Source of the DNA: Ramazzottius varieornatus
Taxonomy: Eukaryota > Animalia > Tardigrada
DNA: 64,000 bases
Assembly: GCA_001949185.1 (NCBI GenBank)
Contig: BDGG01000008.1
Coordinates: 1,776,761-1,840,760 of the forward strand
Reading direction: 5' to 3'
A program made the translations under genes and the position numbers. Under the pieces are notes generated by a model, which saw nothing but the letters and a program-made list of their open reading frames with translations, ran no database searches and was not told the origin of the DNA. Of this stretch, positions 12,941 to 60,100 are shown piece after piece. How positions within the stretch are numbered: the stretch's first letter is position 1; each line of letters opens with the position of its first letter.

Positions 12941-13150
12941 CTGCGGGATGGCCACCGAATATTAAACCTTTTGGTACCAACTATACGTGTTATCTTCTCC
13001 AAACTTGAAATGTGCACGAGTTTTAACTATTATACATAGACACAAATTAGCACATGATCTTTCTGTACCACGCATGTGCGTCAGGTTTCTCGTTAGATAC
13101 TTTGGGTCTCGGAAACCGGACTAAAGTCTTGTCCGTAATAAAACAAAGTA

Positions 13151-13355
13151 CTGTATTCCCTCGATAGTTCTGCGAATCACGTGACTGTTCCGGTAAATGT
13201 TACCCGGCGGGGATAGAAAATATTCATGCATTCAATCAAAGATTGCTCGCCAATCAAGTAGAGTGACGGGCGTCAATCAAACAAGCAGTGATATCACTGC
13301 GGGTGTAATATACTGGCCTGATGACGTAGTTCGCAGAACTATCGAGGGAATACAG
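13151..13355. mobile_element. MITE, Tc1/mariner-pogo type
   Basis: Perfect 26-bp TIR CTGTATTCCCTCGATAGTTCTGCGAA / TTCGCAGAACTATCGAGGGAATACAG, flanked by TA on both sides. Confidence 0.9.
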
Positions 13356-14059
13356 TAACAATGAGCAATGACGAGCTTTCATGGTCGGAATGTGATAGAG
13401 GCAGCTGAGCGCGCGAGCGCCACGACCTGTTTTGCCAAGATCAATTACGTCGACGTTTGTTGCGAAAGCAATGGAATGTCATTTCAAGTTTGTTTTCCAA
13501 CCGTCTTCGTAGTACTTCCTGGTGGGCATAGTGTTAATGTCTCGCACAATTTATTGTCAACATGTTTTTGTCACTTGTCAGTAGTGTTGTTCTGCGTTTG
13601 GAATGCGACAGGCATTGTGCTCGCATGATTGACCTTCCCAGAAACCAGATTCATACTATTGTAATAGTCACCAGAACGTCAGCGGCGGAAATACGCACGG
13701 AAAACCCCGCGCCCTGAATTAGAACATATTGGCACCTTTATCCGCAATGATGAAACTGGTCTCAACTTATTGCCTGGCTGATAGGTCGATCGTTGATCGA
13801 CGGTACTGGCACTAGATCCTGCGACTTCGGAACAAAGAAGAATGCTGCTCTTTTTACGCTTTTGACCGGTAGGCAAAAACTGGCGCACAGTAATGCTCGA
13901 GCATCCTTCATTTCGTCTTTTTGTGCTACTAGACTTTCAGACTTTGGTAAAGTTGGTCGTGAAGATGGCAACTTTCAACATCGGATAGAATGCACGCCGT
14001 GTTTTGCACTACATTAACAGCTGTTTCAGACATCACTGTTGGGTAATACTATCAACACA

Positions 14060-15561: not shown

Positions 15562-15967
15562 GTTGAGGCGAGGAAGGTTCCCGGAAGAAGGTTTGAACGA
15601 GAAGTAAACTGAAAAAACGTGTTGCTTTCCGTTCCTTCTGTTACGGACTTTTATATCGAAATCGACAAGTGTGGAAAATTTATTTGCTGTTGGAAGTCGG
15701 CGTCCATGCGTCACTCACTTTCAGGTCTAGCTTGCCTAATTAATTTGGTCCGCGTCTTTGTTCCACTGGTTTTACCACTCTCGGTGGCGTGAGCACAATA
15801 GTTTTACCGAATGGAGTTCTTCCGTGATCGGCACTACGGCTTCTGGCCAATTATTCTTAAGTACTTAGATTCTCATTCATCGGACTATGACACGTGTCTG
15901 AGACTGCAGGTGATAGGTCTTGTTACGTAACGACTGTGTGATTCCTTCTTCCACACGAGGTGAACAT

Positions 15968-38527: not shown

Positions 38528-39574
38528 ATGAACGATACTATCGGCGGTTTTTCCGTCTCGAACCTTACCATCCCCATCGACGCCTGTGCATCTCCTTCCT
38601 TTGCATTTACCTCTCCTCAACGCCTTGCCGTCTATATTTTAGCCATCCCCCAAACCATTCTTACCATTATCATGAATATCTTAGTACTGCTGACATTTGT
38701 TTTCAACAAAAACCTACGCACTGCCCAGCATTTTAATTTCCTTAATCTGGCTCTTTGTGATTTCATCATTGCATGTGTGGCTCTCCCTTCCCGCCTCACT
38801 CTGGATCTGCACGGATGTTGGCCTGCGCCTTACGCATTCTGTCGGCTCTATAAGCTCCTTGACTGGATCACCACGTCGGAAGCAGCTTTTACCGTAATCC
38901 TCATCGCCGTTACTCGTTACCGCATGATCACACGTGGCGCTGTGTACAACCAGGAAGAGACTTCGAGGAAGGTAATCAACCGGATAATCCTTACCTGGAT
39001 CATCAATATCCTGCTCTACGGACCTGTTCAGTTCGTGGATAAGTACACGCGTATTAGCATCACCGGAGTTGGCCAATGCAGTACAGAATTCTTCCAAATA
39101 TCCTGGTTGGGAAATTTATTGGTCTTTACAAACAATATCCTTCCGCCGGTAATCGTGGTTGTCATTTACGCCTTCGTGTTCCACGCCTTACGAGGTCGAA
39201 CGAACCAGATTGCTGCCAACCCGTCTAACGCTCAAAGTGCCGCTAACAGCACGAGACCGAAAGAGAATCGTGCTGCGAAGCAGGGAAGAGCTCTGATGTT
39301 ACTGACAGCGTCTTTCCTTCTAACATCGTGCCCTGTTGGGATAATCAGTATCGTCATGTTCGCTAACGACTCGCTGACGATCTTCCAGGTTTACCTGTTT
39401 CTCCTTTACCTGCTTTACTTCAATAGTCTGATGAATACACTTGTCTACACCAGTAAGGTACCTGCGATGAAGACGGGAATGCAGAAGTTGCTGTGCATGC
39501 GTCCTGGCACAGCCATGGACAGAATGGCTCGTGGCACGATTACAGCTGTCGAAACGAAGAACGAAAACTCCTAG
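38528..39574 (+). CDS. Intronless class A (rhodopsin-like) GPCR, orphan, aminergic-like N-terminal half
   Basis: 348-aa ORF with seven hydrophobic segments and N-glycosylation sequons NDT and NLT at the N-terminus. TM1 MNILVL, NKNLRT, TM2 NLALCDF, ECL1 WPAPYAFC, TM3 TRY, TM4 W, ECL2 Cys (QCSTEF), TM7 NSLMNTLVY. Confidence 0.9.
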   Translation: MNDTIGGFSVSNLTIPIDACASPSFAFTSPQRLAVYILAIPQTILTIIMNILVLLTFVFNKNLRTAQHFNFLNLALCDFIIACVALPSRLTLDLHGCWPAPYAFCRLYKLLDWITTSEAAFTVILIAVTRYRMITRGAVYNQEETSRKVINRIILTWIINILLYGPVQFVDKYTRISITGVGQCSTEFFQISWLGNLLVFTNNILPPVIVVVIYAFVFHALRGRTNQIAANPSNAQSAANSTRPKENRAAKQGRALMLLTASFLLTSCPVGIISIVMFANDSLTIFQVYLFLLYLLYFNSLMNTLVYTSKVPAMKTGMQKLLCMRPGTAMDRMARGTITAVETKNENS

Positions 39575-40286: not shown

Positions 40287-41591
40287 AAGATTGTTATATC
40301 AGTGCGCGCAAACATTCACCGAGTATTCTGACGTACTACTGGTCACCGACGAGCTTTTAAACCGAGCACTGCTGAGTTGATTGACAATTTACACTGGGCT
40401 GGGTGTTAGAAGGAGCGAGATGGAAATGGCCAATGGAATTTGCGCATGCGGCGAATCAAAACCGTTATTGGTCGTAGGATAATTAAGCTCCCGTTTAATT
40501 GTCACGCCCATTATCGACGGTTAATTTTTTGGTACACTGTAGCATCAGGATACTCCCCTCCCCCGACATTAGATTTGATTGATGTGTTCGGCCACAATAC
40601 CGCTTCAGTTTGGTACTCGAGCACGCCAAAAAAACAACCAAATATTACTGTAGTGCTCATAGTTCATCGCGCACTCAACCACGTGATGAGTCATCATTAC
40701 CCCCGTGTGATCAGCTGTTTAGATTAGGTGTACACTCCCAACCGAGCATCATTTACTGATCCTGTGGTTGAGTGCACGATATCAAGACGGAAATATTACA
40801 ATCTCGACGAATGCGGAAAAAATGTTCAGTTCGCTAAAAAAACACTATCTGTATGTGTCGTATCTTTCAGCCCAGTTTGAGTTTGACTAGTCCGGTATAT
40901 GACCGTGAATCGCGCGCTGCCAGCGCCGGAATTCGAAGTACGTCATACAGGGGCTCTAACTTACCCGCTAGGTGGCAGGTATTACTAGACTGGTTCAATG
41001 CTTGTCTGGAACACACTTTTCGTAAATTTGCTGCGTCCGCGCAGTACGTATACTTACATAACGATGCACTCCCGTAGGGGGTTGCACAAGCAGTAAAGCC
41101 GGACCGGAGCTGTACTTCCCGTATACGATTAAGTGCTGGGCGGACGCAGCGAACTTTTACAATAGTTGAACCTGCACCAAAATGGACTTTTACACCTCAG
41201 TATACGAGTCAACCTGCGACTGTTACGTACTACGGTGACGTGTACGCATAACTGCGAATTAAAAAACTGTAAGGCAATAAATAACTCGTGAAGCAAAAAC
41301 TGATGGTCTTACCGCTGCCAGCCTTTCTGGAGAGCTGATTCGACACCTTTATTTTTTGAGGGCAATATCACTGGAGCTTTTGCACGTTCGAGGAACACAG
41401 ATTTGATCGAGATAACAAAATACACCGCTACAATATCTGCAGCAATCCAAGCAGTCTGTAGACAAATATTTCTCAACCTTAAATCGTACAATTCATCCAA
41501 GTATTACGTGACTCCATCTTGCTCCTTCCCGCTTTCGCTTTAATGGTTTGTGCTAGGGAATGGTAACGAAGATTTTCCGTCCACATCGTCA

Positions 41592-42635
41592 TTAACCAAA
41601 CCAGGGTTTCCTGGTCGTATCCATGACTGTACCGTCAGAGTTAAGAGCAGCTTTTTTCGCGTCTTCTTGTTTCTTGTTCTTCAGGTATCCTGCTCCGGCT
41701 CCAACAGCTGCTCCACCAGCAATACCTTGCTTTACTGAGACCTGCAACCAAAAACCGTGCTCCAAGAATATCAATCCTTTGGACCATTTTCGTATCGAGA
41801 AGAACGCAAAACTTGCAAATCCATGTATTCGAGCATCTGTACTTACCCCAGGGATAAATATGGCCGCAATACCTCCTCCAATTGCACCAAGAATACCACC
41901 GCTGACTACACCGGCACGCTTCACTCTCAGATTTTCTTCTAATTCAACCGGTACGCAACCTACGAGTAACATAAGGGATCAGACTGTGTTAAAATTACAC
42001 CCGCACCACAAAGTTTTAACACGATGAAAGATATTGATTTGCCTGATCACGATACTAAGATATACGGGTAGCTGCGGCCCATTCCCAGTGCAACCAACCT
42101 CTGACCAAAATTGTTCAGGAAATCAGTTTTAAGTTTTAGGACCCCAAGGGCAAAGTTGAATTGCCAACGCTATCTTACGCAGCAGACATCGCGGAACACG
42201 ATGGTGAAGTCCATTGGGCCGTCTGACCAGTAGTCAGATGGCTACGTTGGAAAAGTCTGAAGGGGTTAAGTATTTTTCACTCAGAAAGTTTTGAAGTTAG
42301 GATGGCGTCATGTAGCATGAAAATGCGTAGGTAGTCGTTCTGGCATACAGCCCCCTGAAAGGGGTTTCACTTAGTGATAACCCCTGAAATATTCCAGAGT
42401 GTCTTCCCAGAAGAGCGAACATTTCTCAGAGACTTTGAACCACGGCGAGGTACGGTAAACTTACCGCACGATGCCCCTTGATATTCCCAACAACTTCAAG
42501 TCAAAAACGCCACTTCGGAAGCAAAATTGATTGTACTGGGAATGGGCCGCAGCTACCCATATGATGACAGGGACACTTACTGGCTGATAAAACGAAACAA
42601 GCGAGGAAGGCTATACAGATCTGGTAGGCTTCCAT
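41592..42635 (-). CDS. Secreted glycine-zipper prepropeptide A (exons 42635-42581, 41959-41847, 41741-41592)
   Basis: Spliced: MEAYQICIAFLACFVLSASCVPVELEENLRVKR|AGVVSGGILGAIGGGIAAIFIPGVSVKQGIAGGAAVGAGAGYLKNKKQEDAKKAALNSDGTVMDTTRKPWFG*. Canonical gtaagt donors and pyrimidine-ag acceptors keep the frame. Confidence 0.8.
42065..42559. mobile_element. MITE in intron 1 of glycine-zipper gene A
   Basis: Perfect 24-bp inverted repeat GGGTAGCTGCGGCCCATTCCCAGT / ACTGGGAATGGGCCGCAGCTACCC with TA just outside each end. Confidence 0.85.
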
Positions 42636-43633
42636 GATACCGAAAAGTAAGACCGCTGAATGAATCTCACGATGAGATTTCAATAATCTATCTACACGTC
42701 ACCACGTCTATCTATCGTCACGAAATTGCAGAAGGGACTATTTTAGTTTATGAAGTGAGAGATTTAACTGTCTGAACATCAACACACGAGCTGTACAAAT
42801 GTTATTTTCTTATGTTCGCTGCGTACTCCGATCGGCAAGTTAAGACGTCACAAAGAACAATAGACAGATGGGCGGAACTATAATGAGACCTGTTTTTTTG
42901 AAGTACTTGGCTGACTCAATCGATCGCGACTTGCAGCAAAACTTAGTAAACGAGAAGCAGTTAACGAATTCAGAAGTTAACAAACACCAATTTTAGTGTA
43001 TTGATTCAGTTGCAAGTACTTTACCATGACTCACACCAGTTTCCAGGTACCTGTTGCTTCCCCATCAGGTGTCTTTCACTGCTGAACAGCAACGCAAACA
43101 GACGTAATCAGAATTTTCTTTGGCTTCCGCATGGAAGCCTGTTGAGGAAGTAAACAATACATCACTTGAAGAACCTCCTACTTCCTACTTCACCACAAAG
43201 TAAGTCTGTTTGTCAAGAAACGCTGACAGTACGTGTACCGCCTCGCCCAGTTGCACTCAATCAGAAGTTGCTGTTTTTTCACCTCGATGAATCGCAAGTC
43301 ACCTTAGTCAAGTGCACGGAAACACTCTCTGAGATCTCAAAACTCAAGTGCCTCCAAAAAGAGAATTCGAAGCAGATATGTAAATAGGTCGTAAATATTC
43401 AGTCAGCGTATTGCTCCAAGAGCGCTAGCTTTCCATGCATTCGCAAGATGAAACGGATTACAAGTCGTAAAGCTCTGAGTATGAAGGAAGGACAATGAAA
43501 ACAATTTGGCTACCGGAGAAAAAAACAAAATCCTGTTGGATAAGCCAGGACAGCGACAGGAGTGAAATTTCCGTAGGTATTACGGTTAGGTTTCTGTGTA
43601 TGCCGCCAGCCATCGATGATTTTGGCAGATGAG

Positions 43634-44273
43634 TTATCCGCCGAAGAAGCGCGAACCGCTGGACTGATAACCCTGATTACTTCCGTACATTGATGGAGAG
43701 CCTTGATAGTTACTGGCCATGGAAGGCCTGTTGTTCTTCCAAGCAGTCGAGAGGCCTCCAATTCCGGCTCCCAAGGCAGCACCTATCAAATACCAGTGTT
43801 CAATGATGCACCACGTCAATTATGCGCCACCATAAAGCGGATGAAGTTCCCTGAGCTATCAGTAAGGAACGGCTGACTTTCTGTACAACGTGTGTTTGTA
43901 AATATCCCAGAGCTTCTCTTCCTAGCCTTGAACTGTATTTGAAGTATACAACAGTACTGTACCTTGTTTCCAGGACATTCCTGGAATCATCGCACCTAGC
44001 AGTCCACCTCCAATCGCCCCTCCGCCGATACCTTGCATGTAGCTTGCTCGTTTCTCCCGGAACAAATGGACGGGCCACGCGGCGGGCGAGCAGCCTGCAA
44101 AAAAAGTCACAATCGTTTTGCTATTCGACCTTCGAAGGTCACTCTGACAACTTTCTCAGAGAGGAACCCAGAAATCCTTGTCGGAATCTCAGTGCGAGAT
44201 GCTTAATGTAACACTTACTGATTGACAAGACACATGCGGCAAGAACAAGGATGTACACATGGCAGCGAGCCAT
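43634..44273 (-). CDS. Secreted glycine-zipper prepropeptide B (exons approx 44273-44219, 44094-43963, 43782-43634)
   Basis: Spliced: MARCHVYILVLAACVLSISCSPAAWPVHLFREKR|ASYMQGIGGGAIGGGLLGAMIPGMSWKQGAALGAGIGGLSTAWKNNRPSMASNYQGSPSMYGSNQGYQSSGSRFFGG*. Confidence 0.8.
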
Positions 44274-45194
44274 TCTAGAAGTCCGAAGCCGAAAAACAGC
44301 GAAAAGTCCAACCTCAGCGGTATTGGTTTTGGGAAAGGAAGTTTTGTGTGCGGGTTGTGAACGACTTTGCTTCAATACTTGGGATCGTTTAAATATTCTC
44401 CATAGGTGGATTTTGGTGAATTTGTTTACCGTTGTTTTGAAAAGATTTCGTTCATTCGTTACTTCATCCTTGACCCTGACGACGGCTCATCAACTTCGGC
44501 AGTATACGTCAGCAAAATGGAACTAAAAGGTTGGCACTTTCCTAAGAGTACCTGTAAAGTAATCCTGAGCTTATTGTTTACCATGTAACAAACACGGCAT
44601 TGATTCGGACCAGCGCAATCGATCAGATAGCACTCAGCATTCGTCTCTAGCGAGGATAAAATACACTAGTATAGCATTTGTGTCCGGCATTCGCACTGTA
44701 TTGAGATTTCGCACAAGGATTACTCTCTGCTAATGATCTTTCCTCACAAACCTCTCGCGTTTTCTGTCGTAATGATTACCTTTGAGCTTGCTGTGGTTGT
44801 ACGTTAGGCTTGTTCCGAAACCGTAAAGCAACGCCGCTTAAGCCGGTTTCTCAGCATGACTTGCAGATGTTTGGTATTGGCATTGGCTAATAACTATTGT
44901 TGTATTATGGTCATGTGATTACCGGTAGCCAAGCACTTTCTTTATTGTGTAAATCGTGCAGTGTTTTTTGTGACTTTGTGACCCTTGAGTATGCATGGCA
45001 CGAAAGGTGTAACAAGCTTTGCAAGGAGGAACAAGCGTTTCGGAAAAAACAACTCAATCAACAGCCAAATAAAATTGCCGGGGGAAAAATCCAGCACGTA
45101 AACAAACAATCTGGCTCAGTAAAGTGTAACTGCTAAACTACATGATTTGTCATGAGCGTAAATATCAACAATTCCTTGCATTAAGATGAAGAAG

Positions 45195-45748
45195 TTAACC
45201 CATTATGCCGCTGAAAAAGCCTTTCTTTGTAGTCGCGCTTCCGTCGTCGCTGGTAGAAATTGAGGAGTCCGTCACAGCCTTGTTCTTGCTGTTCCTTCCA
45301 GCCAAGAATCCGGCACCACCACCTATTAACGCTCCGGCAGCGGCGCCCTTCTTGGCGTCAAAGTTTGGGTTGAACTTCTGTCCGAAGTGACCGATCAAGG
45401 CTCCAAGCGCTGCTCCACCGAGACCTCCAGTGATGGTCTGACTTGCCTGACGTTTTTCTCTCAGCTCCGAATCGACCGGAAAACAACCTAGAAATACGAA
45501 CAGGTCTAGTCCAATCGAAATACAGATGCCATACGAGGCCGGCAAACAATTTGGGACAATCGTCATTTCAAGTGGCGCAAGTTTTCACCAAACGACAAAG
45601 AAAACTACGCGACTCAAGACAGCAATCGTTTCGAGGTTGTTTAGCGGCCTCCCAGATGCTTTTGGATGGGGTGCGGTGAAATCTTGAACTTACTGGCAGA
45701 GATGACGAAGGTGGCAAGGAAAGCCATGCAGATCTGGAACGTATTCAT
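45195..45748 (-). CDS. Secreted glycine-zipper prepropeptide C (exons approx 45748-45694, 45487-45195)
   Basis: Spliced: MNTFQICMAFLATFVISASCFPVDSELREKR|QASQTITGGLGGAALGALIGHFGQKFNPNFDAKKGAAAGALIGGGAGFLAGRNSKNKAVTDSSISTSDDGSATTKKGFFSGIMG*. The signal exon is clearly paralogous to that of gene A. Confidence 0.82.
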
Positions 45749-46499
45749 TTTCAACGGGAAGGAGGGTGGGAAGCGGTGGTGCAAACTTGGGCAAGGTAGT
45801 CGCAACGATCGAGCAGGAACAAAGGCAGAGTAATACCGTGGTCGAGGTGAAAACTCGAGTTGCTGAATACTGAATGAGCTACGGCCACTGCATGATGAGG
45901 AAGTAAGTGTTTGTTGGCCAAATTATATATCACGAAGTGGTTTGACAAAAAACGTCTCGGCCAACCTTGGATAAACAATTCCGGTCTTGTCTTGTATTGT
46001 GCGTCACTGTCGACAGGTGAAGACGCGGAACAGGTAAGTCGACTTTCCGCTACCTAGCCTACGTACCCGCAACTACCGCGAAATGGACCCCAGTGAGTCA
46101 TGCCCACTTCAAGAACAACCGTGCGTTGGTTCGAACAATGAGATAAGTTCGTGAGAGTACGCTCCACTTTCGCGAGCTTCTAATAACTTAGCATAGCCAG
46201 CACACAGACACTCGAGAAATGGCTTTGTGGCAGAATGGCGCGCATGCATTCCAGATCTGAAGGTGGATTGATCATCGAATTTCTCTACAGTGGACAGCCG
46301 GTAGACTTGATGTTTCTTCGTTTTTACATAACCGAACTCAAAGCACAGAACTGAGTGGAGCCTTAGAAAACAATATCGAACGAAAGAAGCGTTGCGCTTC
46401 TCCAACTAGAGAAATGTGAAGAGCGCCACCTGTCGCTATCAGCCTCTGACGCGGAAATTGAGAAAGGGCTTCCGGCACCATATTATAGTAGTGTCCCTT

Positions 46500-46716
46500 T
46501 CTAGAACTGGCTAGTGGTTCTGACCATTGGAAAGGCCGAGCAAAGGAGGCAAACCATTGTAGAGCGAGCACTTTTACTTGTGACTCACAGTACGGTTCCC
46601 CAGTAAAATTTTTAATCGCCCCGATCAACTGGCGTGTCTTTTTTCAGTACTGTGTTTGCGATATCTGAAAGCTCGAAGAATCTGATCGTCCATTGAAATC
46701 TCGACAGACTTAAAAA
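46500..46716 (+). repeat. Dispersed direct repeat, second copy at about 50303-50478 (probable TE fragment)
   Basis: Shared blocks TGGTTCTGACCA(T/C)TGG(A/G)AAGGCCGAGCA and CGATATCTGAAAGCTCGAA(G/C)AATCTGATCGTCCATT(G/C)AAATCTCGACAGACTTAAAA. Confidence 0.8.
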
Positions 46717-46856
46717 ACACCGAACAATACTGACGTTGCTCACTTCTAAAGACCATACACTCGCTTTTCCTGTTGAACACCGACTTCGTGTGCGTTGTGT
46801 CCAATAGATCGTATATTCTCTCCAAATCAACTAGAAAGTTATATTCCGGATACACT

Positions 46857-47660
46857 ATGAAGACCGCGATCTTTGCACTATTTCCTAACATCGTCTCTGT
46901 CCGTAAGTAAACAACTTCACATTGCCGAATACCTTTTCAGGTGCTGTTTCCCGTCTGTCTGGCCTATGAGTCCATGAAACGCATGGCCGACGCGGCCTGT
47001 ATAAAATGTATTAAAACTGACGCACGGTGTCATGTGAAGCGATCAGTTTTGCCCTGCGATTGGCCCAAGCCAGTAACGTCACGCTGCCACTGTGGTACCT
47101 TCAATACGAGCCGCGTCGGCCTTGACGAAACAGGCTTCGTTTTCGAACATTAGTTAGTCTGTCCGTGAACCATCACGCCATCAACAAGAGGAAAAGTAAC
47201 ATCGCGGTCCTGTCCACCAGCAACGAAGCCTTACCATCAGCCGACCTCCCTGTCAACAGCGCGGGACCCACTAATGCAACCTCTGCTGTCACAAGAGGTG
47301 TTGCACCCGGTCAATCAGCCCGCTCGTCGGGACCCCTAGTTACTCCTGTCGACCAGCCCGCAGTGACGGTTGTTGCGTCCAACCCACCTGTTGTTGTGGT
47401 ACCTACTGCTGTTCTGCCTGTTGATGCTGTGCCCGTGGCACCACGCCACCCGTGATTACTTTGGCAAACGCAGCTGCCCTTCAAGACCAGGTCGACACTG
47501 CCCATGGACTGCCTGCCGCAGACTCGCGTTTGAATGTCGGAATGAACTTAGCTGCCGCTAGCGAGGCCTCCGTCGTCGACCATAACAACGCAGTCATTAA
47601 TGCGATAACCAACTCGAGACCAGCGGCAGATGCGGCACCGCCGCTGGTTATTACAGTACG
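46857..47660 (+). pseudogene. Disrupted secreted Ala/Pro/Val-rich prepropeptide gene
   Basis: ATG 46857 exon ends in gtaagt, with an acceptor at 46940. Correcting a 1-nt frameshift and removing an insertion bounded by GTCC(A/G)TGAA repeats gives MKTAIFALFLTSSLSVLFPVCLAYES(M/V)NHHAINKR|KSNIAVLSTS...PPVVVVPTAVLPVDAVPV. A second frameshift near 47450 joins the 47452 ORF. Confidence 0.55.
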
Positions 47661-47931
47661 AAAACCGGGTTCTCCTTTGAGCACATGCAATCAACTGAGC
47701 CTTTCATTCTGGTGGAACATTTCGAGCCTGTTAAGTTAGCCAAACTTTGCCGTTTATGTGCGCCACGTTCGTTATGTTATCATTCGCGTTACTTTCTCTC
47801 GATCACGTTCCCAAGTTTTAATTGTTGGGACGACAAACCAAAAAGTAAAAGGCCAGAAAAAGAAATGGATACTTTCAGCTTGATCCAAATATCAAGTACG
47901 ACGCTGCTGGAGGTGAATAAGAAATACTTCT

Positions 47932-48491
47932 TTACGCACTGGTGGCGGATCCGCTTATGGTGGGATTAACCCCAGTAGCCTCTCCAGAAGATACACGTAC
48001 CCCTGCTACAGGGACCACTACTACAGGGACAGCTGTGGCGACGTCGACGGTGGCAGGTATCACAACGGCGGGTGCGGCAGTGGCCACCACCACCACCGGC
48101 GCTCTCGGTGCATTAGTTATCCCACCAACCGGCGCACTTCGAACCCCGTTAGCAGCAGACTCCTGGTTGGACTTGTGGACCTCATGACCGATGAATCCAC
48201 CGATGATTCCACCTACCACAGTTCCAACAGGCCCCGCTACTACAGTTCCGGCCGCGGCTCCGAGAGCAGCTCCACCAAGTGTATCGCGCTTCTCGCGGAC
48301 CTCTGTCTGGGATTCCAAGCTCGATACAGGAAGACAGTCTGAAAGCGTAATATACTGTATTGGGAGCGAATCGAATCAAACTCAGAGCGTGTAGAGCGCA
48401 AATGAAGAGCGCTCCAGTACTGCGAAAATGACTCACTGCAAGTGGCGATACAGACAGCGAGAACCATCATCTTCACTTTTCCTGAACCCAT
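47932..48491 (-). CDS. Secreted glycine-zipper prepropeptide D with Val/Ala/Pro-rich tail (exons approx 48491-48437, 48338-47932)
   Basis: Spliced: MGSGKVKMMVLAVCIATCNCLPVSSLESQTEVREKR|DTLGGAALGAAAGTVVAGPVGTVVGGIIGGFIGHEVHKSNQESAANG...APVVVVATAAPAVVIPATVDVATAVPVVVVPV...SATSA*. Confidence 0.8.
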
Positions 48492-49132
48492 GCTGAAAAC
48501 AGATGTGCACTTCGGGACTTGGAAAAGAGAACTCTATTGTGAAGTGGAATAAACTACGTGAAAAAATCATAAGCTTGTCTAATTTCACTGGTGCACTATG
48601 TCGATTAAATATTTGTTGAATGTCATCTGCAGGTAAGTTCGATTCAGTTATTGCGTCATAAGTTTTGGTCTCAGTTCACATGTATGAATCTCCCGCTGGG
48701 CTCGCATTTTAATTTTTCTGTCAGCGGCTTGTGTTATCCAGTGTTACCGCGCATCAAAGGTAGCCAACTCGGCAACCCTCTCTATACTGCTATTTCCGCG
48801 TTTCCGGTGTGGTGACCGGTGTTTGTTAGCTATAGCTCGGGATATGCGACAAGACTTCCGTTGTGTTCATCTTTAATGCTGGTTATAGTGATGCTATTTT
48901 GTCGTGATCGCATTTCGCCAAGCTTCGTCATACGTCCCTTTCAACCGCAGCAAGGTGTTACAAACCCAAAGGAAACAGATGTAGAAACGGTAAAATCAAC
49001 CCACAACTTCATCCTGTTGAACGTTTCTCTCATCGTTCGGCAGCTTCATTCCCCCTATCATTGCTGGCAGCAATAAAATTACCAACCTACGGTCTGTATC
49101 TACTGACGTGCGAGCTCTCAGTCTAATAATCA

Positions 49133-49317
49133 GTACACCTACGATGAGAAATTATGGGACAGGCCTTTTCGCTATGGCGGTACGGAAGCACGTACGCACT
49201 CGACCGATTCACACTAATGTACTTTTCAACACTTTTCTACGGCTGAATTTCCATTTTGCCGTCCTTTCCACCTGTCCCATAATTTTACTGTCCCATAATT
49301 ACCCATCTTGCGTATAC
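49133..49317. mobile_element. MITE, same family as 14721-15119
   Basis: TIR-like ends GTACACCTACGATGAGAAATTATGGGACAG / CTGTCCCATAATTACCCATCTTGCGTATAC. The internal sequence aligns with the 14.7-15.1 kb copies. Confidence 0.85.
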
Positions 49318-50835
49318 TAGACAACGTAACCAGACTATCCATTTACTGTGATGCCTCGTAGATATAGCGCACCACGATGTGGCCGCGTGTGATCATCAAT
49401 TTTGTTTCGCAAACAAGGAAGTTGGCCTACAAACGACAGCAGAACGACAGTTAATTACAAATATAGCTTGGTTGTATGTACTCGCGCTTGATATTTTATG
49501 AATACCCGGCCACGGCGCTGCGGAATTAGGCGTGATAACGCCTGCAAAAGGAGCATGGAGCGATCAACTACAATATGATATTGCTCGTAGAACCGAGAAG
49601 CAGCGACTTTGATATAATACATCAAAGATAGCCGGATTTTCGTCGCATCTATCAAAAACGTGAATTCTCATTAATATGAGCGGAAACTTTCGTAATAGAG
49701 GAATACATGGAAACGATACTTGGTCAGTGAGCCCGAAATCCTACTTGAACCAAGACAACCACGATTGTATCTGAGTCCTGTCTGTAGTCGGCTCTGTTTG
49801 AATGTTCTAGACCAAAGAGCTCCAGCGAACTTAGGACTCGTGAGAAAGTCCAACGGGATATTGCGAGAAGCTGCCACTTTTGTAAGGCGGTTGACTGCGT
49901 CTGAGCAAACGAAACATGGCATTGACTTCAGCAAGTAGAAATAAGAAAGAGGGAAGCAGTGGTCGCTCTCAGTTTTGTTTGTGGGAGAATAAAGAGCCAT
50001 GATCCGACTTGAGCAGCAGCCATGGCGCTGCGCGATAGCCAATGTGACAAACAGTTGGTGCTCGTATGTGCTGCCCGTCATGCAGCCACCGGCTTGCAGT
50101 CGGGTCGGTTTATCTGAGTTAATCCGGTTTCCGCTTCGTAACGGCTCTATGGGTGCAGCGTACGTACACGCCGAGCAGGCCGCTTGAGTCGTGACGTCAG
50201 ACCCAGCATTGCCGTTCCCCAGATGTTTGTCACATTTGCGCTACGGCTGTCAATACCTGCACAGGTTTGAATGTTGGTATGACAGCATACCGGTAGAATA
50301 TCACTAGCTGATGGTTCTGACCACTGGGAAGGCCGAGCAGAAGCAAAGAAGTACAAGTTTTGCGAGTAAGAACGTTTGCTACTCAGATCAAGTTGCGCAC
50401 TTGTTTTCAGTACAGAGGTTACGATATCTGAAAGCTCGAACAATCTGATCGTCCATTCAAATCTCGACAGACTTAAAAGGGCCAGGCTTCGCTCGGCCTG
50501 ATCAGTTACAATCGCGGTCTTTTTGTTTCACCAAAGCCGAAAACACCACGTCTGACGCGGATAGACCTATTCTAATCCGGACGGTCTGATCCAGACGGAC
50601 AGGAAATCTGATCCAGACGGAAAGCTGATCCACTCGTCTGTCGTCACCTTTCGTCAAACCATCGACGGAAAGGCGGGTCAGCAACGAGCGGCTGGCAAAG
50701 CCTTTCTAACTTAGTAACAAGATGTGAGCCTACGTCAGAACGCAATAGGATAATTTACTACGACATTTCACATTTCACATTTCACGTAGAACTACATACA
50801 ACATGGTAAACTAACGCCCCATCTGTGATGAAAGA

Positions 50836-52816
50836 CTAAGATCGATAGATGAAAGATGTTCGAAACGGTTTGGGTGCATTGACTATTCTCATCAGTGTGT
50901 GCCCGGGGGTTTCAGCTCCTCCAAGTAATGGTCCTAAGGTGAAGTTCCTCGCTAGCGTAACAAAGAAGAGGAACAGTTCCATCCTTGCCAGCGATTCACC
51001 CAAGCACTGACGCTTTCCTAAAGGATATAACAATGGCTATTTTCCTCCTTTTGCAGAGCTTCGAACGAGATAATTGTGTCACGCTTAAGACCCACCTGAG
51101 CCAAATGGCATCAGCCATTCAACCTTGCTAATAAACTTTCCATCCGCATCAAGAAAACGCTCTGGCTTGAACTTCATGGGTTCCGGAAAGAGCACTGGGT
51201 CTTCGTGGACAGAAAATATCATCGGGGCAATCTTTGTATCTTTGGGAACGATGAATCCACTCAACTCCACATCTTCTACGGTTTTTCGTCCCGCAACTGG
51301 AACCAAGTTCCCCAAACGCAGAACTTCCGTTATCGTAGCTTGACAGTATGGTAGTTTTTCTGAAACCGATACTAACATGTACCAGACAAAAGTCACGAAA
51401 TCCGTTCAACTGAGCGGCGAATACAATAACGGAAATGCTTGCGTGCCCTTGATCATATGAGACACAGCGTCAATCAATGCCTTCAATATCAATACCAATG
51501 TCAATGCCAATGTCTTCAGCGTCAATAACTTCAATGGTAACCAGTGAACACGGGTACGCAAGCATTTCCGTTATTGTAAAATTGGCACCGCGAACCATGA
51601 TTCACCTTTGTCTTCCAGAACAGGAAACTGCCGATCTCCAAGGACGCTGTCGATTTCTTTTTGCACATTGGCTAGAACTTTTGGGTTTTCTATGAGATAA
51701 AGAATAGCCCAGCATAACGAAGTCGATGTCGTTTCGGTCCCCGCAGCGAAAAGATTATGGATGGACATGATAAGCTGTCGATCTGCATCAGAAAAGAAAG
51801 TCACCCTGTATGTAACTACTAAACGTAAACTGAGCTGACTTTAGACATGAACCTGTGAATGTAGAGGTAGGATCGTCCCTTTGAGTATATTGCTGTTTCA
51901 AGAACGCGTCAATGTAATCCGACGGGGCGTCAGCACTGGGTCGAAAGACCTTCCTGTGTTCGTCGACGAGGTCTTGCAAGAACCGAGCGATCTCTTCGTT
52001 GTTCTTAGTGCACTCCTTTAGCACCGTACTGAATTTCGTAAACGGGATGTGGCGCAGGAAGGGGTAGAAGTCCACTGGTTGGCCTTTTGCTGTCAGAGTA
52101 AGGTTTTTACCAATAAGTTCGGTCAACCGACGAAGCCGGGCGTCCTGGTGGCTAAACCGCTTGCCATACGCTATGCCGCAAATAACGTTGTTGGCACATG
52201 GCGTTATGACTTCAGTTGGATCGATCGGGTTTTCTTTGAGAGCTGTGAGATCGTCGACAAGCTCTCGAGCTTCGTCCAGTATCATATCTTGCAACCAGCT
52301 TTTGCCCATGCCAAAATCTCGGAGTGTGCTAAGAGCGAACCTCCGATGTTCTTTCCACAGATATCCTTCAACAAATAGTATGCCCTGTCCCCGAAAGAAC
52401 TCATCACGCGTGAAAGATTTTGGTCTTCCGGAGAACGCATCATGACCGAGTGCATGTTTGATAGTCTCGTAATCTTTGATGAATACAAACCGGTTGTCTT
52501 TTCCGGCGCCCAACTGAAGAGTCGCAACGCCATTTTTGCCATACCGGTCGACCAGCTTGGCCATATGACGCAGTCTGTCAAATCCGCTCCCTCGTAGTTG
52601 TCCCAAGTTTCCTATCAGCGGAAAGCCTACGATCGCAAAATGACTTTGGAATTCAGCTGCGTGCTTTGAAAGGAATTTAGTTGTGGTCATGAATGAATAC
52701 GTACATGCGGGACCGGGAGGAAGGTTAGACGGTTCTGCTCTTCGTCGGCGGTAGTATGCCAACAACGAAACAAAAAGTATCAGACCGAAACTCCACCATA
52801 AAGGAATTTCGATCAT
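50836..52816 (-). CDS. Cytochrome P450, CYP2 clan, multi-exon, apparently intact
   Basis: N-terminal TM anchor, [33 protein letters not shown]-helix [14 protein letters not shown]-helix EVLR, FKPERF, heme motif PFGSG|[17 protein letters not shown] split by an intron. Confidence 0.95.
51424..51576. mobile_element. Tc1/mariner-type MITE in a P450 intron
   Basis: TIR CAATAACGGAAATGCTTGCGT(G/A)CCC with TA flanks and an internal TCAATG/CCAATG hexamer-like repeat. Confidence 0.85.
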
Positions 52817-53442
52817 TTTTGAGCTGCTTAATGCGGTTCCCGCGTTTCAAAAATTTGTAGGCGCTAAGCAAAATATTTGTAAAGCTTGAAAAAGTCTTAA
52901 TGGTGACCACTGTTTGATTATATGAGGCTGCCAACTCCGTTGTGACGGAATCAAGGGACAAGAAGGCTAAGGCTTCGCTGATTTCCTTATCAGAAAATAA
53001 TGTCTGGTTTACTGAGGTAGTTGACTGAGATACAGTATTTTCGTAGACCCTTATCACCAAACGTACTGCGACCGTGTATACAAGAACAGGCGATATCCAC
53101 TGTTACCCTTTGAACCCAGAGCGACCCTTGCCGTCTACCAGAGTAGGGTTTGTCACTGCCGGGAATTTACCATATGCAGCCAATGCAAGTTCTTATCGAG
53201 AATCTTGGCGGGGATGTAATCTGGGTTTTCATCCGTGTCTGGAACGAGTTTTACCAAGGTACTGCACTATCGGTGTGTACGACACTTTTCTTGTTCCTGA
53301 TTTGGTTCGAAATTTGTAGTCCATGCGGTTTGAGTAGCTTGTATTTACAGTGCGTCGTTACGATGCTGGTGCTGAAACTGAGGACTATTCAAAGAAACGT
53401 ATTACGAAGGCAGAACAAAAACGAAATGCGTCATCCAGACAC

Positions 53443-54688
53443 CTATTTGGTTCCGGTGGCGACCTGAGCGGCGTGTTGCTGTTCGACAGCGGTGGCGGGC
53501 ATACCCGAAGCAACCTTCTGTGCATCGGTTTCCTTGTTGTGTTGATGCAGCAAGTGTCCGCCAAGGGCTCCAACTCCGGCTCCAACAGCAGCACCTAACG
53601 GTCCCCCAATAACTGCTCCTGTGGCAGCTCCGGCCAGAGCCCCAGTCTTGGTACCTGCTCCCGATCTTTTGACACGTCCTTCCTCAGCCTTCTTTTCCTT
53701 CTGGTGTTCATGCCCAACGAGGGCACCAGCCACGCCACCAACAGCGGCTCCGACGGGTCCCGCTGCCAAACCTCCAGCGGCAGCCCCGACGGCAGCACCG
53801 GTCTTGGTTCCAGCACCCTCCCGTTTGGCTCGCGCAGCGGAAGAGCCGTTGCCGGAGCTGGCGTGTTGCGAGTGGGTGTCGCCAGGGGTAACGTTGACGT
53901 TGCCGTGGTCAGTACCAGCTGTGGAACCAGCTCCCTCACGCTTGGCTCGGGAAGCAGAGCTGGCATCGGCGACGTTACCGGTGGTATGCTGTTGTTGGGT
54001 GTTTGTGTTGTGGCCGTGAGTGTCAGAATGGCCGGCGTTGGTGTTGGAGTGGCCGGTACCAGTCGTGGAGTCAGCTCCTTCACGCTTGGCTCGGGCATTA
54101 GCATTAGCGTTAGCGGCATGAGTCTCAGCATGGTCGGCTTTGGCGTTAGCGGCAGCAGCCTGCTGTTGAGCTACCCCGGCTTTGGTGTCGGTTTTGGCCA
54201 TCTCGTGTCCAGCGATACCGCCACCAACCGCCCCAACTGCAGCTCCTATAACAAGACAGCCCCAACAGTTACACCTTCGTATGACTTGTATTACGAATGC
54301 CCGCTCTACAGTGTACAGAAAGACGTGTGCAGTCTTACCTACGGGTCCTGCGACCAATCCTCCGGCTAAGGCTCCAGCGGCGGCGCCACCGACGGTGCCT
54401 CTCTCGTGTCGTTCAAGAGGAGTACACTCTGCAAAGAGAATGAGCTACTAAATCGGACCTATAACTATGCAAAAGCATCTCAAAGGATTGCAGGCGATGC
54501 AACGAGTGGAGAATTATTGTTGAGAACACGTTTCTAGCGAAACTTAATTCTCCAGAATTTTCAGTGACCACTGTTCACTGAAATCGAGAGACATGGGCAT
54601 ACTGTATGGTATATACTTTAAGGGATATAGACTTACGGACGGCGACTGCCACGAGACCAAGAAGAACGCATATCCTTAGGGATGCCAT
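53443..54688 (-). CDS. Secreted glycine-zipper polyprotein E with five R-x-x-R processing sites (exons approx 54688-54637, 54428-54339, 54248-53443)
   Basis: Spliced: MASLRICVLLGLVAVAVQCTPLERHER|GTVGGAAAGALAGGLVAGPVGAAVGAVGGGIAGHEMAK...RAKR|EGADSTTGTGHSN...RAKR|EGAGSTAGTDHGN...RAKR|EGAGTKTGAAVGAAAGGLAAGPVGAAVGGVAGALVGHEHQKEKKAEEGRVKR|SGAGTKTGALAGAATGAVIGGPLGAAVGAGVGALGGHLLHQHNK...GTK*. Confidence 0.85.
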
Positions 54689-55570: not shown

Positions 55571-56599
55571 TTAAAAGCGAACTAGATCCAGGTCAGTTTG
55601 ATCGACAGCTTCGTCAATGCTCTGGAACACACTCCCCCCTATTTCCGTCATCAGCTTCTCGCTTTGCATCCTTTCCTCCGCCGTCTCGGGAAGGACCACT
55701 TTCAGGATCACCGTCTTGATGGCCATCGCGATGTCATGGGCGCTGAAGGGCTTGTACAGCGGGGGAACGTGGATGAAGAGCGTAGCATTGGGGTTGATTC
55801 GGAGGCTGGTGTAGTAGATGAACTCACAGAGGTACCGGCCGGCGTCTGTGGACAGCTGGCACACCGGAACGTTGCAGTAGTTTGTGTAGGACCTTGCGGA
55901 GTTGGTTGTCCACGTGTGACACTTGTCCACGCAAACATTCGTGGACAGGCAGCGTTCTTCCTCGTCCGAACAGTACCGTCCACCTTCTGGAATCTGACAT
56001 TCCACATCTGAAACACAGGAATCTGTCGACACATACAAAGACTGCAAAGCTGTGAATCTGCCACAAAGGCAACGGCCGAGATTTGCCTATCTGTGACGCA
56101 GCACGCAGTAGGCTCAAGGCCTACACATGAAATTCTCCTAGTAGGAATTTGTAGCGGTGACATGACATGATATGCCACGACATACCAGCCTTACCTGGTC
56201 TATGATATCCGTGACTGTGCGCGTGGCGTTCAATCTGAATGGCACTCTTCCATGCCAGCAAGGAAGAAACACCACAATGGATGACCAGATCGGGATCGTA
56301 CTTCTTCCAGAGTTCAGGAACGATCGTGGTGACAGCCGAGTAGGCTACAGGAATTTCATGGATGATGAGATCGACTTGCTCCGTCAAGTCGTTGATGGTC
56401 TTCAGCTGCTGCACTGCTTCCCAGCTGGCATTGATCGAATGCTCTCCTAAATCCACGTTCAAAAAGCTAAAGGATTCCAAGGAGGTACGGAAAAAAAGGG
56501 CGACTTACCGAATGGTCCAAATCCAGTGACAAGAACACAGGGTTTAGCGGAACGACTGGTCTGACGCTCGATGCCATTTTCTGCCCGGATATCTCCCAT
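55571..56599 (-). CDS. PGPEP1: Pyroglutamyl-peptidase I (peptidase C15), 3 exons
   Basis: VLVTGFGPFG|EHSINASWEAV, PDLVIHCGV, catalytic Glu (IQIERHA), catalytic Cys (STDAGRYLCEFIYYTSL), catalytic His (FIHVP). Confidence 0.93.
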
Positions 56600-57194: not shown

Positions 57195-60100
57195 TTATAG
57201 TGTTCGAAGAAGCGATGAAATGGTAAATGAAACCGAGAATATCATACAGGAGTTTACTAGGATCATGTTCCTTCCAGCTCCACTGATTGTGACACGAAGA
57301 ACCTCCACTGGTTCCGCAGCTATCGTCACATCGTTCTGCATGCCATAGATATCGGTAGCGTCGGCGATGACATCAGACTGAGGCTCGACGGGTTCCACTG
57401 GGCGGTTGATCGATACTGTGGTGGTTCTCATGTCCGCTGTGGTCTTGGTCGATGCCGAACTGGCTTCCACCCGTCTTCGGTAGCACTGTTGAGACTTCCG
57501 GGCTGGACCGATGCAGGCGGAGTAGGCCATGACGTATGCGAGTGCGTTTTGTTCCATGACGCCGTTCACCAAATGAGCCATGGGTCCTTGCGAGTAAGCG
57601 AGAACGTCTTCGCCGTCATGGGCAGCTGATGAAGCTGGGACTGTGCTTTGTTGCCTGTAGTGCTTCTCCTCTGTAAAGCAAGATTGTTGCACAATGCACA
57701 GGATTTCTAGAAAATAACGGATGTTTGATTTGCGCCGTACTTATGGGCTTCTCGGTTATATTTTCTCGGCCTTCCGAAGACTGTACAAAACCAGGCCCAA
57801 CAGCGTACATGAGCGTTGTGTACGGTTTGGCGTCGACATCAGACCGAGTTCCCGCTAGGTCTGCAAAGTCCGGGAAATATTTGTCAGCAGAAAGATTCTG
57901 TCTTTATGGTTCGTTATGTGGACCAGCCTTACCTAAAATGGGGTGCCCGCGATTTGAGTAACCTAAAGAGAAAAAAACTTTCATTTGTAGTATAGGGAGC
58001 TTTGAGAGGCAGCCAGGCTTGCGATCTTCCTGCGGGATGCAATGGCTTACCGGAAATGGCAAGCGAGTGAGCGTGATCAGCCGTGACTAGAGATCAGAAA
58101 GTTCATGGGTAGTTGTGACAATCTCGAGAAAACACCTCACGACTAGGTCACCGTGGGTTGTAATATGGTACTGACCGATAACCAGAGTGTCCTCCAAGTT
58201 GATCATTTTCATGGCCGTCGAGACCGCGCTCGAAAATGCTATGGTGTCCTCCAGGGCGTAGCGTGCATGGTTCTCATGATGGGCGTGGTCGATCCTGCCG
58301 CCTTCCACCATCAGGAAGTATCCCTTCTTGTTCTTCTGGAGGATCTTCAGCGCGGTATGCACCATGCGGGAAATGGAAGGCTGACCATCAGGGCCAGTGT
58401 CGCGATCCGAATCGTATTTCATGTGGCTATGGTCGAATAGCCCTAGACAGTGAAGTTTTAATGTTCCTCAGAAAACGGACATTCCGCTTAACACTTAAAA
58501 GGCCACGCAATTCCAAGCTCTGGGAGTACAAGGGGAGGGGGAGGGGTAGATCACCTTCCAGACGAAATCTGGCCAAAAACGGAAAACTTTCTGGAAATTT
58601 CCAGAACGCTTCCAACTAGTACCCGTCTCCTTTGATTAGTAGGAAAAAAGTTTCTGAAAGCAAAGGTGGAAATCCGAGGCGAAAAGGTTCAACAAGAACC
58701 ATTCTGCAGGGTAATTAGGGTGCGCCAGGCAACCGGGGTACCCCCTTGGTCTTTTAAGTGTTAATTGCCACCATTAATCCATTTAAACGTGGGCGTACTG
58801 GTACCCGGCAGAAAGCTCATAGCCTGTTCTTACCAAGAAGGTAATCGGTTTCTTCAATGTCAATGTCGTTGAATTCGTCATTTTTATGGACGTAGTTGTA
58901 GGCGAAATTTCTTTTAAATTTGTCAGCGACCCAGTCCTCGACCAAGTTCCGTCCATCCGAACGCCGCCCTGTTCGATTGGCGTACTGAATGTCGGTCAGG
59001 TCCTTTGGGAAAAAGTGACGGCGCCCTCCTCCTAGGATCACCTAGAACAGAAATGCGTAACGTTTTGCGAAAATCAGCCTACTTGAGTTTGGGTTTATCC
59101 GTTACCTTGAGATCTCGACCAGGAAGTTCCTCAACCAGCTGCTTGGCAATGTCTTTACAAGCGCCATGGCCTTCAGGGATAGCGCTATCGTCTTCCCAAT
59201 CTCGGTCAGCTGCATGAGCGTAGAAGGCCGCCGGTGTCGCGTGCGTGATCCTCGTGGTCGTTACAATCCCCGTGGACTTCTCCGCTTCCTGCGCCCATCG
59301 CAGAATATTGGACAGCTTTGAGCTGTTCGTCACTGTCGAACAGTTAGCCAGCAGCACCGAGTCATCCAGGCCCAGTACTCGTGATTTAGTTTTCACACCG
59401 GAAGCCATTGCCGTGGCGGTACATGCCGAATCAGGAATTTGCTTATTCGTACAGTAGGTCTGTCAAAGTAAAATTTGAATAATATTCGGGTCGTATTCCG
59501 AGATTGCATCTTTGATTCGGACTAACGTACGTAGGTTTGGAATGGTCTCTTAAGTTATAAAGTGGGCTTCTCAACAAGTGTAACCTTGTACGAGTGGGTA
59601 CTCGGACACTCACCTTGATCAATGCAGTGTGATCCAGCCTTTCGTATGCCAGATGGTTTTCCTCACCCTTACCGCCGTGTAACTGACCGTCAAGAATGCG
59701 CGCTGCCGTCGTGGTCGCCATGCTGAGTCCGTCACCGATAAACAGGATGATGTTCTTGGCTATCCGAGTGTTGATCTTTTCTTGAAGGTGGTCCTGTATC
59801 AGGGTTTCTGCTTGCTTCTTCCAGAAGTCGGCTTCTATGCAATAGGAAAAAGCGTCTGGTTAAGGCTTCGCCCCCTGTATGTCAGAGAATCGAAGGTGTA
59901 AATTTATAGTAGGAGAAATAACCGGTAGACAAGACCTCCTGAAACGTCCGAACGCTCTTGGAAAGTTGAAACTTAAATAAACGAAATGTCACGCCCCGTA
60001 CAATCCACATTGCGCGTTCCACAAACCAATAGACTTCTAAAATCAATATGCTCAAAAGTAGCGAGCTTCTGGATAATCTTTCTGGGACGAGAGCTCGAAC

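Follow-up and report, generated by a model that had tools for sequence, protein, structure and literature searches.

Envelope proteins of the OsmB, YiaD, SlyB, Pcp and YMGG type in bacteria (PF13488, PF13441, PF05433) combine a signal, a Cys, a short linker, two GxxxG arms, a Pro/Gly turn and a basic or His-rich tail. In animals, Baramicin and apidaecin are furin-cut multi-peptide host-defence precursors. The bacterial layout recurred in five minus-strand genes, here called A to E, of the tardigrade Ramazzottius varieornatus, within a 64,000-nucleotide (nt) stretch of DNA (the window; contig 8, positions 1,776,761-1,840,760, of the 55.8-Mb assembly). Unlike the OsmB-type proteins, the tardigrade genes had spliceosomal introns and a eukaryotic signal peptide without a true lipobox, and their family had polyprotein forms, signals for amidation and a convertase site at the end of a propeptide. 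To our knowledge, the lipid anchor of bacterial lipoproteins is not possible in an animal. The five genes are read here, with a probability of about 0.45, as encoding stress-inducible, convertase-processed, partly amidated, extracellular membrane-active defence peptides, most likely antimicrobial.

Each gene began with a small signal exon (55 nt in A to D, 52 nt in E) that opened with ATG, encoded 17-18 mostly hydrophobic residues and ended in phase 1 at a GTAAGT or GTGAGT donor. The split codon that opened exon 2 was Ser in A, B and C, Asn in D and Gln in E, and was followed by C-V-P (A), C-S-P (B), C-F-P (C), C-L-P (D) or C-T-P (E). An acidic propeptide of 6-14 residues came next and ended in RVKR (A), REKR (B, C and D) or RHER (E). 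The zipper arms were joined at …IPG-VSVKQG… (A), …IPGMSWKQG… (B), …GQKFNPNFDAKKG… (C) and …AGPVG… (D and E units 1, 4 and 5). A scan of both strands of the window with the pattern 'ATG + 40-70 nt + GT[AG]AG[TAC], phase 1, hydrophobic' returned exactly the five signal exons of A to E and nothing else; a chance origin of the five-exon pattern is excluded. A preliminary description had proposed five minus-strand genes with a phase-1 signal exon of 52-55 nt, a C-x-P, these five propeptide ends and two GxxxG arms around a turn, and all of these elements were recovered at the positions of Table 1.

In gene A, whose 5' untranslated region extended to about 42796, arm 1 closed with …IFIPG and arm 2 opened with VSVKQG…, followed by a Lys-rich tail and the C-terminal …RKPWFG. 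Gene B had a Ser/Gly/Tyr/Gln-rich tail and ended in …SRFFGG. The peptide of gene C was Gln-initiated after REKR, had a longer loop between the arms (GQKFNPNFDAKKG) and ended in …FFSGIMG. In gene D the zipper (…VVAGPVG…GHEVHK) was followed by a 70-residue Val/Pro/Ala/Thr-rich tail, which was compared with the neighbouring plus-strand open reading frame (ORF) and was unrelated to it. Gene E had five units after RHER, divided by RAKR, RAKR, RAKR and RVKR. Unit 1 was a zipper with an Ala/Asn/His tail, and units 4 and 5 were zippers with GHE/His-rich ends. Units 2 and 3 were His/Thr/Asn/Ser-rich and had lost the zipper, and in the unit alignment their EGA(D/G)ST start resembled the EGAGTKT of the zipper units. 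They look like degenerate internal duplicates, with a possible function as spacers or His-rich peptides.

Table 1. Models of the five glycine-zipper precursor genes, in window coordinates
Gene	Position	Strand	Product and coding exons	Basis
Gene A	41592..42635	-	105 amino acids (aa); coding exons 42581-42635 / 41847-41959 / 41592-41741	sequence and spliced contigs
Gene B	43634..44273	-	111 aa; coding exons 44219-44273 / 43963-44094 / 43634-43782	sequence and spliced contigs
Gene C = RvY_13333	45195..45748	-	115 aa; exons 45694-45748 / 45195-45487	sequence, spliced contigs, P0123
Gene D = RvY_13335	47932..48491	-	153 aa; exons 48437-48491 / 47932-48338	sequence, P0001
Gene E	53443..54688	-	314 aa predicted; exons 54637-54688 / 54339-54428 / 53443-54245	sequence; predicted splicing

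Assembled contigs of four runs (X1, X3, X7 and X11, from four studies) were compared with window positions 41550-47549. The runs had been tagged 'RNA?' by guess, and contigs without introns can arise from RNA only. In gene A, the intron at 41742-41846 (105 nt) was skipped in X1, X3, X7 and X11, and that at 41960-42580 (621 nt) in X1, X3 and X11. In gene B, the intron at 43783-43962 was skipped in all four runs and that at 44095-44218 in X3, X7 and X11; the gene C intron (45488-45693) was skipped in all four. Every junction of A to C had GT..AG ends on the minus strand and fell exactly at the predicted base, so that RNA confirmed all five introns, two in A, two in B and one in C. Unspliced pieces were also present, at a contig depth of 10-fold or less. 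Contig depth, a poor measure of expression, was 160-330 for A, 63-318 for B, 200-790 for C and about 10 for the neighbouring transcribed 46.8-47.5 kb.

Splicing of gene E is predicted: its splice signals are canonical, and removal of a 93-nt GT-AG intron would restore a zipper (…AGPVG|AAVG…) resembling those of E units 4 and 5 and of the Hypsibius exemplaris protein BV898_14015. The second introns of A (41742-41846, 105 nt) and E (54246-54338, 93 nt) lay inside the hairpin, were multiples of three and had no in-frame stop, and the ORF track therefore ran straight through them. Their retention would add 35 and 31 residues, respectively, within the turn; for gene A intron 2, the spliced form was dominant (contig depth 160-330).

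The spliced models of C and D were identical to RvY_13333 (P0123, 115 aa) and to 'hypothetical protein RvY_13335' (P0001, 153 aa), respectively. For A, B and E, the profile and word-indexed protein searches returned no database protein, only weaker relatives, and these three genes are probably unannotated. Exons of A, B and E entered the searches singly, and C and D in full as P0123 and P0001.

The R. varieornatus genome was searched in six frames with single exons and a family profile, and nine loci were inspected in detail. Seventeen matching stretches were found on contigs 1, 2, 5, 8, 13 and 17, and the family comprised at least about 15 loci on at least six contigs, in tandem clusters. Paralogues, among them three in tandem on contig 13 and another polyprotein (L008) on contig 5, kept the phase-1 signal exon of 55 or 58 nt, (C/A)-x-P, R-x-K/R-R and the zipper, with identities among them of 35-50%. 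The diverging animal family of secretory prepropeptides in tandem clusters that had been proposed was supported by these tardigrade paralogues. Two A-type paralogues (L006:3339-3728 on contig 13 and L007:2161-2868 on contig 2) had a Cys in arm 1 (…LGCILPG, …LGCLAGAVLPG) and another in the loop (VSCGTG, VSCKQG). This pair across the hairpin is a possible disulphide staple and was absent from the window genes. A weak Gly-zipper_Omp match at L005 (contig 9, 360500-366000) was a long tandem array of GGFGSELGGGLGSGLRSRLA repeats and not a family member.

Protein searches (an exhaustive profile search over 1.84 billion representatives plus word-indexed searches) returned RvY_16520 and RvY_16579 from Ramazzottius, and BV898_14013 (A-type), BV898_14015 (D/E-type) and BV898_00127 from H. 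exemplaris, with BV898_14015 two genes from BV898_14013 on the same contig. BV898_14013 (P0162) had the signal followed by S-C-x-P, then REKR, a …PGISWKQG… zipper and a …TGR end. In the nematode Aphelenchus avenae, AAVH_16267/25151 had a signal, a propeptide ending in RERR, a zipper and a …NKHKHD tail like that of RvY_16520. Among named matches, animal homologues were confined to tardigrades and the anhydrobiotic A. avenae. Unnamed metagenome/ENA proteins included multi-unit precursors (P0002, P0121, P0130, P0134/P0143 and P0286), with four units in P0002, three in P0121, and two each in P0130 and P0286. P0130 had two identical zipper peptides, each after an acidic spacer and RVKR and before Gly-Lys-Arg or Gly-Arg-Arg, an order that, as read from the sequence, is the textbook layout for cleavage plus amidation.

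No literature was found that linked tardigrades with glycine zippers or named these genes. The preliminary description, which had recognised no named family, agreed with this: the family is undescribed, with no name in the literature. Parts of it can already be seen in databases, under 'glycine zipper domain-containing protein', and in the supplementary tables of one paper.

The core encoded by the signal exons was hydrophobic (Kyte-Doolittle mean over 10 residues, 2.5-3.2), and the residues ahead of the Cys were small. In P0130, in the nematode protein and in the locus L001, Ala took the place of the Cys that follows the signal. At signal-peptidase sites, the -1 residue is most often Ala. Since Cys swaps with this typical -1 residue, C-x-P would represent positions (-1)(+1)(+2) of the signal cleavage site and lie outside the product.

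R-x-(K/R)-R stood directly before the zipper in A to D and between all units of E, with RHER before E unit 1. Convertase-type sites were kept in the paralogues, in Hypsibius, in A. avenae (RERR) and in P0002, P0121, P0130 and P0286. A C-terminal Gly was present in A (…WFG), B (…FGG) and C (…IMG), and D and E were without it. Ends in G, GK or GR also occurred in RvY_16520, RvY_16579, P0140, BV898_14013 and L006/L007, nearly all A-type relatives had such ends, and the P0130 units ended in …NLG-KR and …NLG-RR. The R. varieornatus genome encoded several proprotein-convertase P-domains and PHM-type copper monooxygenase (Cu2_monooxygen) domains. A signal peptide, convertase cleavage and, for A to C, amidation are well supported as predictions from these signals, and processing would be by a furin/PC-type convertase.

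The predicted products of A, B and C had 72-84 residues and a net charge of +4, located in the tails, and that of D had 117 residues and a net charge of -1. The predicted E units had 35-73 residues, were His-rich and had net charges of -1, -4, -3, -1 and +1. The preliminary description had ascribed a basic or His-rich stretch to all five genes; only the products of A, B and C were cationic, and the net charge of D and the E units was -4 to +1.

Pfam scores covered the whole protein or units for C, D and E, and single exons only for A and B, in which an intron splits the hairpin. Gene C scored 27.2 bits for Gly-zipper_Omp (cut-off 25). Gene D scored 28.2 bits for Rick_17kDa_Anti (cut-off 24.2) and 25.0 for Gly-zipper_Omp. 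Whole gene E scored 50 (Gly-zipper_Omp), 39.5 (YMGG) and 31.3 bits (Rick_17kDa_Anti), and its units 4 and 5 alone scored 29.2 and 33.2 bits for Gly-zipper_Omp. The glycine zipper of the preliminary description was borne out by C, D and E, which reached the Pfam gathering cut-offs. With NCBIfam, whole preproteins aligned from the signal onward with the N-termini of YiaD-family lipoproteins (34.1 against a cut-off of 175), and D residues 5-74 aligned with positions 7-72 of the 72-position OsmB model (23.3 bits, cut-off 98); both scores lay far below the cut-offs. The signals ended in LSA-S-C, LSI-S-C, ISA-S-C, ATC-N-C and VAV-Q-C (A to E) and did not fit the lipobox tested, [LVI][ASTVI][GAS]C.

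Identity to single bacterial proteins was 55-65% over 35-50 residues, and alignment scores exceeded those of shuffles with z of 10-15 in full shuffles and 6-8 with every Gly held in place. Gene D and P0165 had …TLGGAA.GA..G.VVAGPVG.VVGG..G...GHE..K in common, RvY_16520 and the lipoprotein P0306 had …GAIAGAVLPGVSA.QGA.AGA.LG… in common, and C and P0297 had both arms in common. The …GGP.G… hairpin also aligned with C19orf12-like (PF20721) at profile positions 49-77, and P0002 reached 56.9 bits through three repeats; only the hairpin matched, and the window proteins scored 14-23 bits (cut-off 30). C19orf12 itself is a membrane protein inside the cell and has neither a signal peptide nor convertase sites.

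Sequence matches in the PDB were limited to a phage tape-measure zipper (E 0.0015) and a protein of the OmpA family, and the ESM Atlas had bacterial glycine-zipper clusters only and no eukaryotic cluster. AlphaFold2 gave one long helix for E unit 5 (predicted local distance difference test, pLDDT, 60.6) and helix 31-57, loop and helix 63-93 for gene C (pLDDT 59.6), both too uncertain to use. A complex prediction for four copies of E unit 4 scored 0.01, which is no answer and speaks neither for nor against self-association.

When E unit 4 alone was compared with bacterial genomes, one Armatimonadota locus matched (54% over 31 residues). No near-identical bacterial copy was present among species-representative genomes, and so there was no sign of recent transfer or contamination. 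Bacterial contamination was also ruled out by the spliced introns, the host-like guanine-cytosine (GC) content and the setting among animal genes; GC content was 44-51% across the window, with no compositional island at the cluster. Two transfers, one for each hairpin subtype, were rejected as well: the subtypes share the signal exon, intron phase and propeptide, which indicates that they diverged inside the animal lineage. Their likeness to different bacterial proteins more likely reflects a small zipper sequence space set against 1.8 billion proteins. Bacterial likeness is not taken as proof of transfer, because zippers occupy a very small sequence space and the matches were the closest among 1.8 billion proteins, because the subtypes would have diverged in animals and because no near-identical bacterial copy was found.

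Transfer stays under consideration because of the patchy animal distribution (tardigrades and one nematode among named matches), and the family may have arisen by old transfer, convergence or descent. A scenario judged unlikely is that an ancestor of tardigrades and, separately or jointly, one of the anhydrobiotic nematode captured a bacterial gene for an OsmB/YMGG-type envelope-stress lipoprotein, remade its lipoprotein signal as a eukaryotic signal exon that kept the Cys, and added a furin-cleaved propeptide, amidation and single- and multi-unit expansion to yield damage-induced, membrane-active effector peptides.

Expression data for homologues were contained in the supplements of Anoud et al. 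2024 (PMC11233135). BV898_14013 and BV898_14014, which are members of this very family, appeared there as unnamed supplementary-table rows, classed 'TardiSpe'; neither human, fly nor worm gave a match, and their best Ramazzottius match was RvY_16520. BV898_14013 RNA increased from 3,477 to 14,665 at 1000 Gy (log2 fold change, log2FC, 2.08; adjusted p, padj, 1.8e-13) and with bleomycin (log2FC 0.97). BV898_14014 RNA increased with ionising radiation (IR, gamma rays; log2FC 2.27) and with bleomycin (log2FC 3.52, padj 1e-110), and the Acutuncus antarcticus homologue increased with bleomycin (log2FC 1.71; PMC11233135). BV898_14013 protein was detected by three peptides (54.6% coverage) and increased (log2) by 1.10 (IR4h), 1.39 (IR24h) and 2.18 (bleomycin). 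It stood third in a list of the nine tardigrade-specific proteins that responded under each of the three conditions, beside TDR1 and AMNP-like proteins, and the D/E-type BV898_14015 was detected and unchanged (PMC11233135). The text of PMC11233135 says nothing on the domain, secretion, processing or family of BV898_14013 or BV898_14014. Members of the family are produced as protein, and damage induces at least the A-type branch.

Searches for RvY and BV898 identifiers returned nothing in the supplements of PMC9145152, PMC5531438, PMC8166744 or PMC11413396, and the A. avenae desiccation expressed-sequence-tag (EST) paper had no link to the family. Upstream of the genes, TGACTCA (AP-1-type) occurred in 4 of 12 family regions, compared with 3% of random 500-nt pieces; the copies at 42912-42918, 43027-43033 and 46094-46100 preceded the 5' ends of the transcript contigs of A and C by 80-230 nt. 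The motif was not enriched in the window (13 found, 10.8 expected). AACAAACA also occurred in 4 of 12 upstream regions, and neither word was significant once corrected for the number of words tried.

The following course would fit these results. The chain would enter the endoplasmic reticulum, where signal peptidase would cut next to the conserved Cys. A furin/PC-type convertase would then cut after the dibasic sites in the secretory pathway and release peptides of 45-117 residues, with three zipper peptides and two His-rich peptides from the gene E precursor. The C-terminal Gly of A, B and C (Gly, Gly-Lys or Gly-Arg in nearly all A-type paralogues) would be converted to an amide. The Gly/Ala-rich helix-turn-helix hairpins, probably too short and too weakly hydrophobic for transmembrane anchoring, would be exported and would act on lipid membranes through glycine-zipper packing. 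The peptides would form a damage- or stress-inducible extracellular defence arsenal, most likely antimicrobial.

Three things favour this defence reading: precursors that come as tandem genes and polyproteins, with predicted amidation and fast divergence; a payload that would seek membranes; and induction by damage. In both Drosophila and C. elegans, secreted immune peptides are induced by irradiation and DNA damage. Damage induction of the Hypsibius homologues fits a stress or defence role and does not separate microbe killing from self-protection. In tardigrades, antimicrobial peptides remain to be found, other secreted effector peptides are not known either, and the Toll/Imd pathways are reduced (Mapalo et al. 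2020, PMC7056985).

Several points weigh against the defence reading. Induction by genotoxic stress suits a protective role equally well. With net charges of -4 to +1, peptide D and every E unit are anionic or close to neutral and so differ from the usual cationic antimicrobial peptides, and the hairpins have little amphipathicity. The closest bacterial relatives are envelope-stress lipoproteins, not toxins, and the best scores for Bacteriocin_IIc (PF10439; cut-off 27.1) were 13.2 for the A exon, 7.9 for C, 20.6 for D and 20.9 for E. The proteomic (tryptic) peptides of BV898_14013 show presence, not processing, and the AlphaFold models are of low confidence (pLDDT about 60). No antimicrobial assay or infection data set for the family was found in the literature. 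The 'bacteriocin-like' label of the preliminary description was dropped on the Bacteriocin_IIc scores, the nearest proteins being envelope lipoproteins and small secreted proteins of the OsmB/YiaD/SlyB/YMGG type; the family, the secretion signals and the zipper of that description were retained.

The main alternative, on balance doubtful, is that the peptides are extracellular protectants, a counterpart of OsmB/SlyB whose hairpins coat the membranes or matrix of the animal itself, or intercalate into them, and stabilise them against damage, osmotic stress or desiccation. It would account for the OsmB/YiaD/SlyB-type closest sequences and the collinearity of D with the whole OsmB model, for radiation and bleomycin induction together with AMNP-like and TDR1 stress proteins, for named animal homologues only in tardigrades and the anhydrobiotic A. 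avenae, and for the D and E peptides not being cationic. However, the lipid anchor that positions the bacterial proteins is missing from the peptides, and the precursors bear the hallmarks of bioactive peptides and not of bulk protectants, namely amidation signals, dibasic processing and several copies per precursor. Data on induction by desiccation were not found in the supplements and papers searched (PMC9145152, PMC5531438, PMC11413396 and the A. avenae EST paper).

These same hallmarks, with acidic spacers in the multi-copy precursors, a signal peptide, C-terminal Gly amidation signals and processing enzymes encoded in the genome, would suit signalling peptides (hormone-, cytokine- or neuropeptide-like) acting on receptors. 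That role is improbable, given products of 45-117 residues and of Gly/Ala/Val low complexity, a large and fast-diverging family (35-50% paralogue identity), high read counts of the homologues in whole animals, and conservation in the hydrophobic zipper and not in a C-terminal receptor-binding motif. There is a similarly small chance that the peptides build an extracellular material, structural or self-assembling, such as cuticle, eggshell or fibres of an amyloid-like or elastomeric kind. Gly/Ala-rich zippers are prone to aggregation, and the 70-residue Val/Pro/Ala/Thr tail of D and the Ser/Gly/Tyr/Gln tail of B would suit such a material; the convertase sites, amidation signals, small size, lack of cuticle-protein domains in Pfam and stress induction within 4 h speak against it. 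That the zipper is a two-helix anchor resident in the membrane of the producing cell, with nothing released, is very improbable despite the Pfam model name 'Glycine zipper 2TM domain' and the partial match to the C19orf12 membrane hairpin, in view of arms of only about 15 Gly/Ala-rich residues, the passage of the same domain across the Sec translocon in bacterial lipoproteins, and a polyprotein layout with luminal convertase sites between units.

The window also contained a plus-strand thioester-containing protein/alpha-2-macroglobulin gene of innate-immunity type (7505-12122; MG4, TED, GCGEQ thioester motif), about 30 kb from the cluster. A paralogous pair on the minus strand (14060-15714 and 19074-20693) had a signal peptide, a common …PNYAEIPQTNFQCPQQPGFYADVNAQCQVFHR segment and long Gln/Gly/Ser-rich low-complexity regions, with no Pfam match on the one exon scanned. 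A single-exon rhodopsin-type G-protein-coupled receptor gene (38528-39574, plus strand) lay 2 kb from A, a cytochrome P450 gene (50836-52816, minus strand) lay between D and E, and exons of pyroglutamyl peptidase (C15) and alkaline phosphatase (56121-56480 and 58087-58422, both minus strand) lay beyond E. At 46550-46720, contigs of three runs stopped at 46715/46716 and ran on into unrelated sequence (GGCCTCGCTTCGCTC…), and several base differences occurred at 46562-46638; this region, between C and D, may be the edge of a repeat or transposon.

The family supplies concrete, synthesisable candidates for tardigrade antimicrobial or secreted effector peptides, and BV898_14013, so far an unnamed 'tardigrade-specific' entry, becomes readable as a glycine-zipper precursor of the secretory, convertase-processed type. 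Of the five genes, three (A, B and E, which encodes the polyprotein) are seemingly absent from public protein sets, though A and B are clearly transcribed. A bacterial-type membrane motif would here be deployed as a processed animal peptide, and transfer versus convergence can be tested with more genomes. If capture of an OsmB-type gene were true, it would define a new class of animal effector peptides, possibly the missing antimicrobial arsenal of tardigrades.

Class II bacteriocins (Bacteriocin_IIc), Caulobacter CdzC/D and Tse4 resemble the predicted tardigrade peptides as small exported membrane-acting GxxxG hairpin peptides, a likeness of description and an analogy in possible mode of action. 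Unlike class II bacteriocins, the tardigrade leaders are of Sec type plus R-x-K-R and not double-glycine leaders, and unlike bacteriocin systems, the family is without immunity or transporter genes. Drosophila Baramicin and honeybee apidaecin have no sequence relation to the family, and the tardigrade payload is a hydrophobic bacterial-type glycine zipper and not a Pro-, Gly- or Cys-rich cationic peptide. The likeness to these two lies in the signal, the dibasic sites between tandem units, the gene clusters, the rapid divergence and the stress or immune induction.

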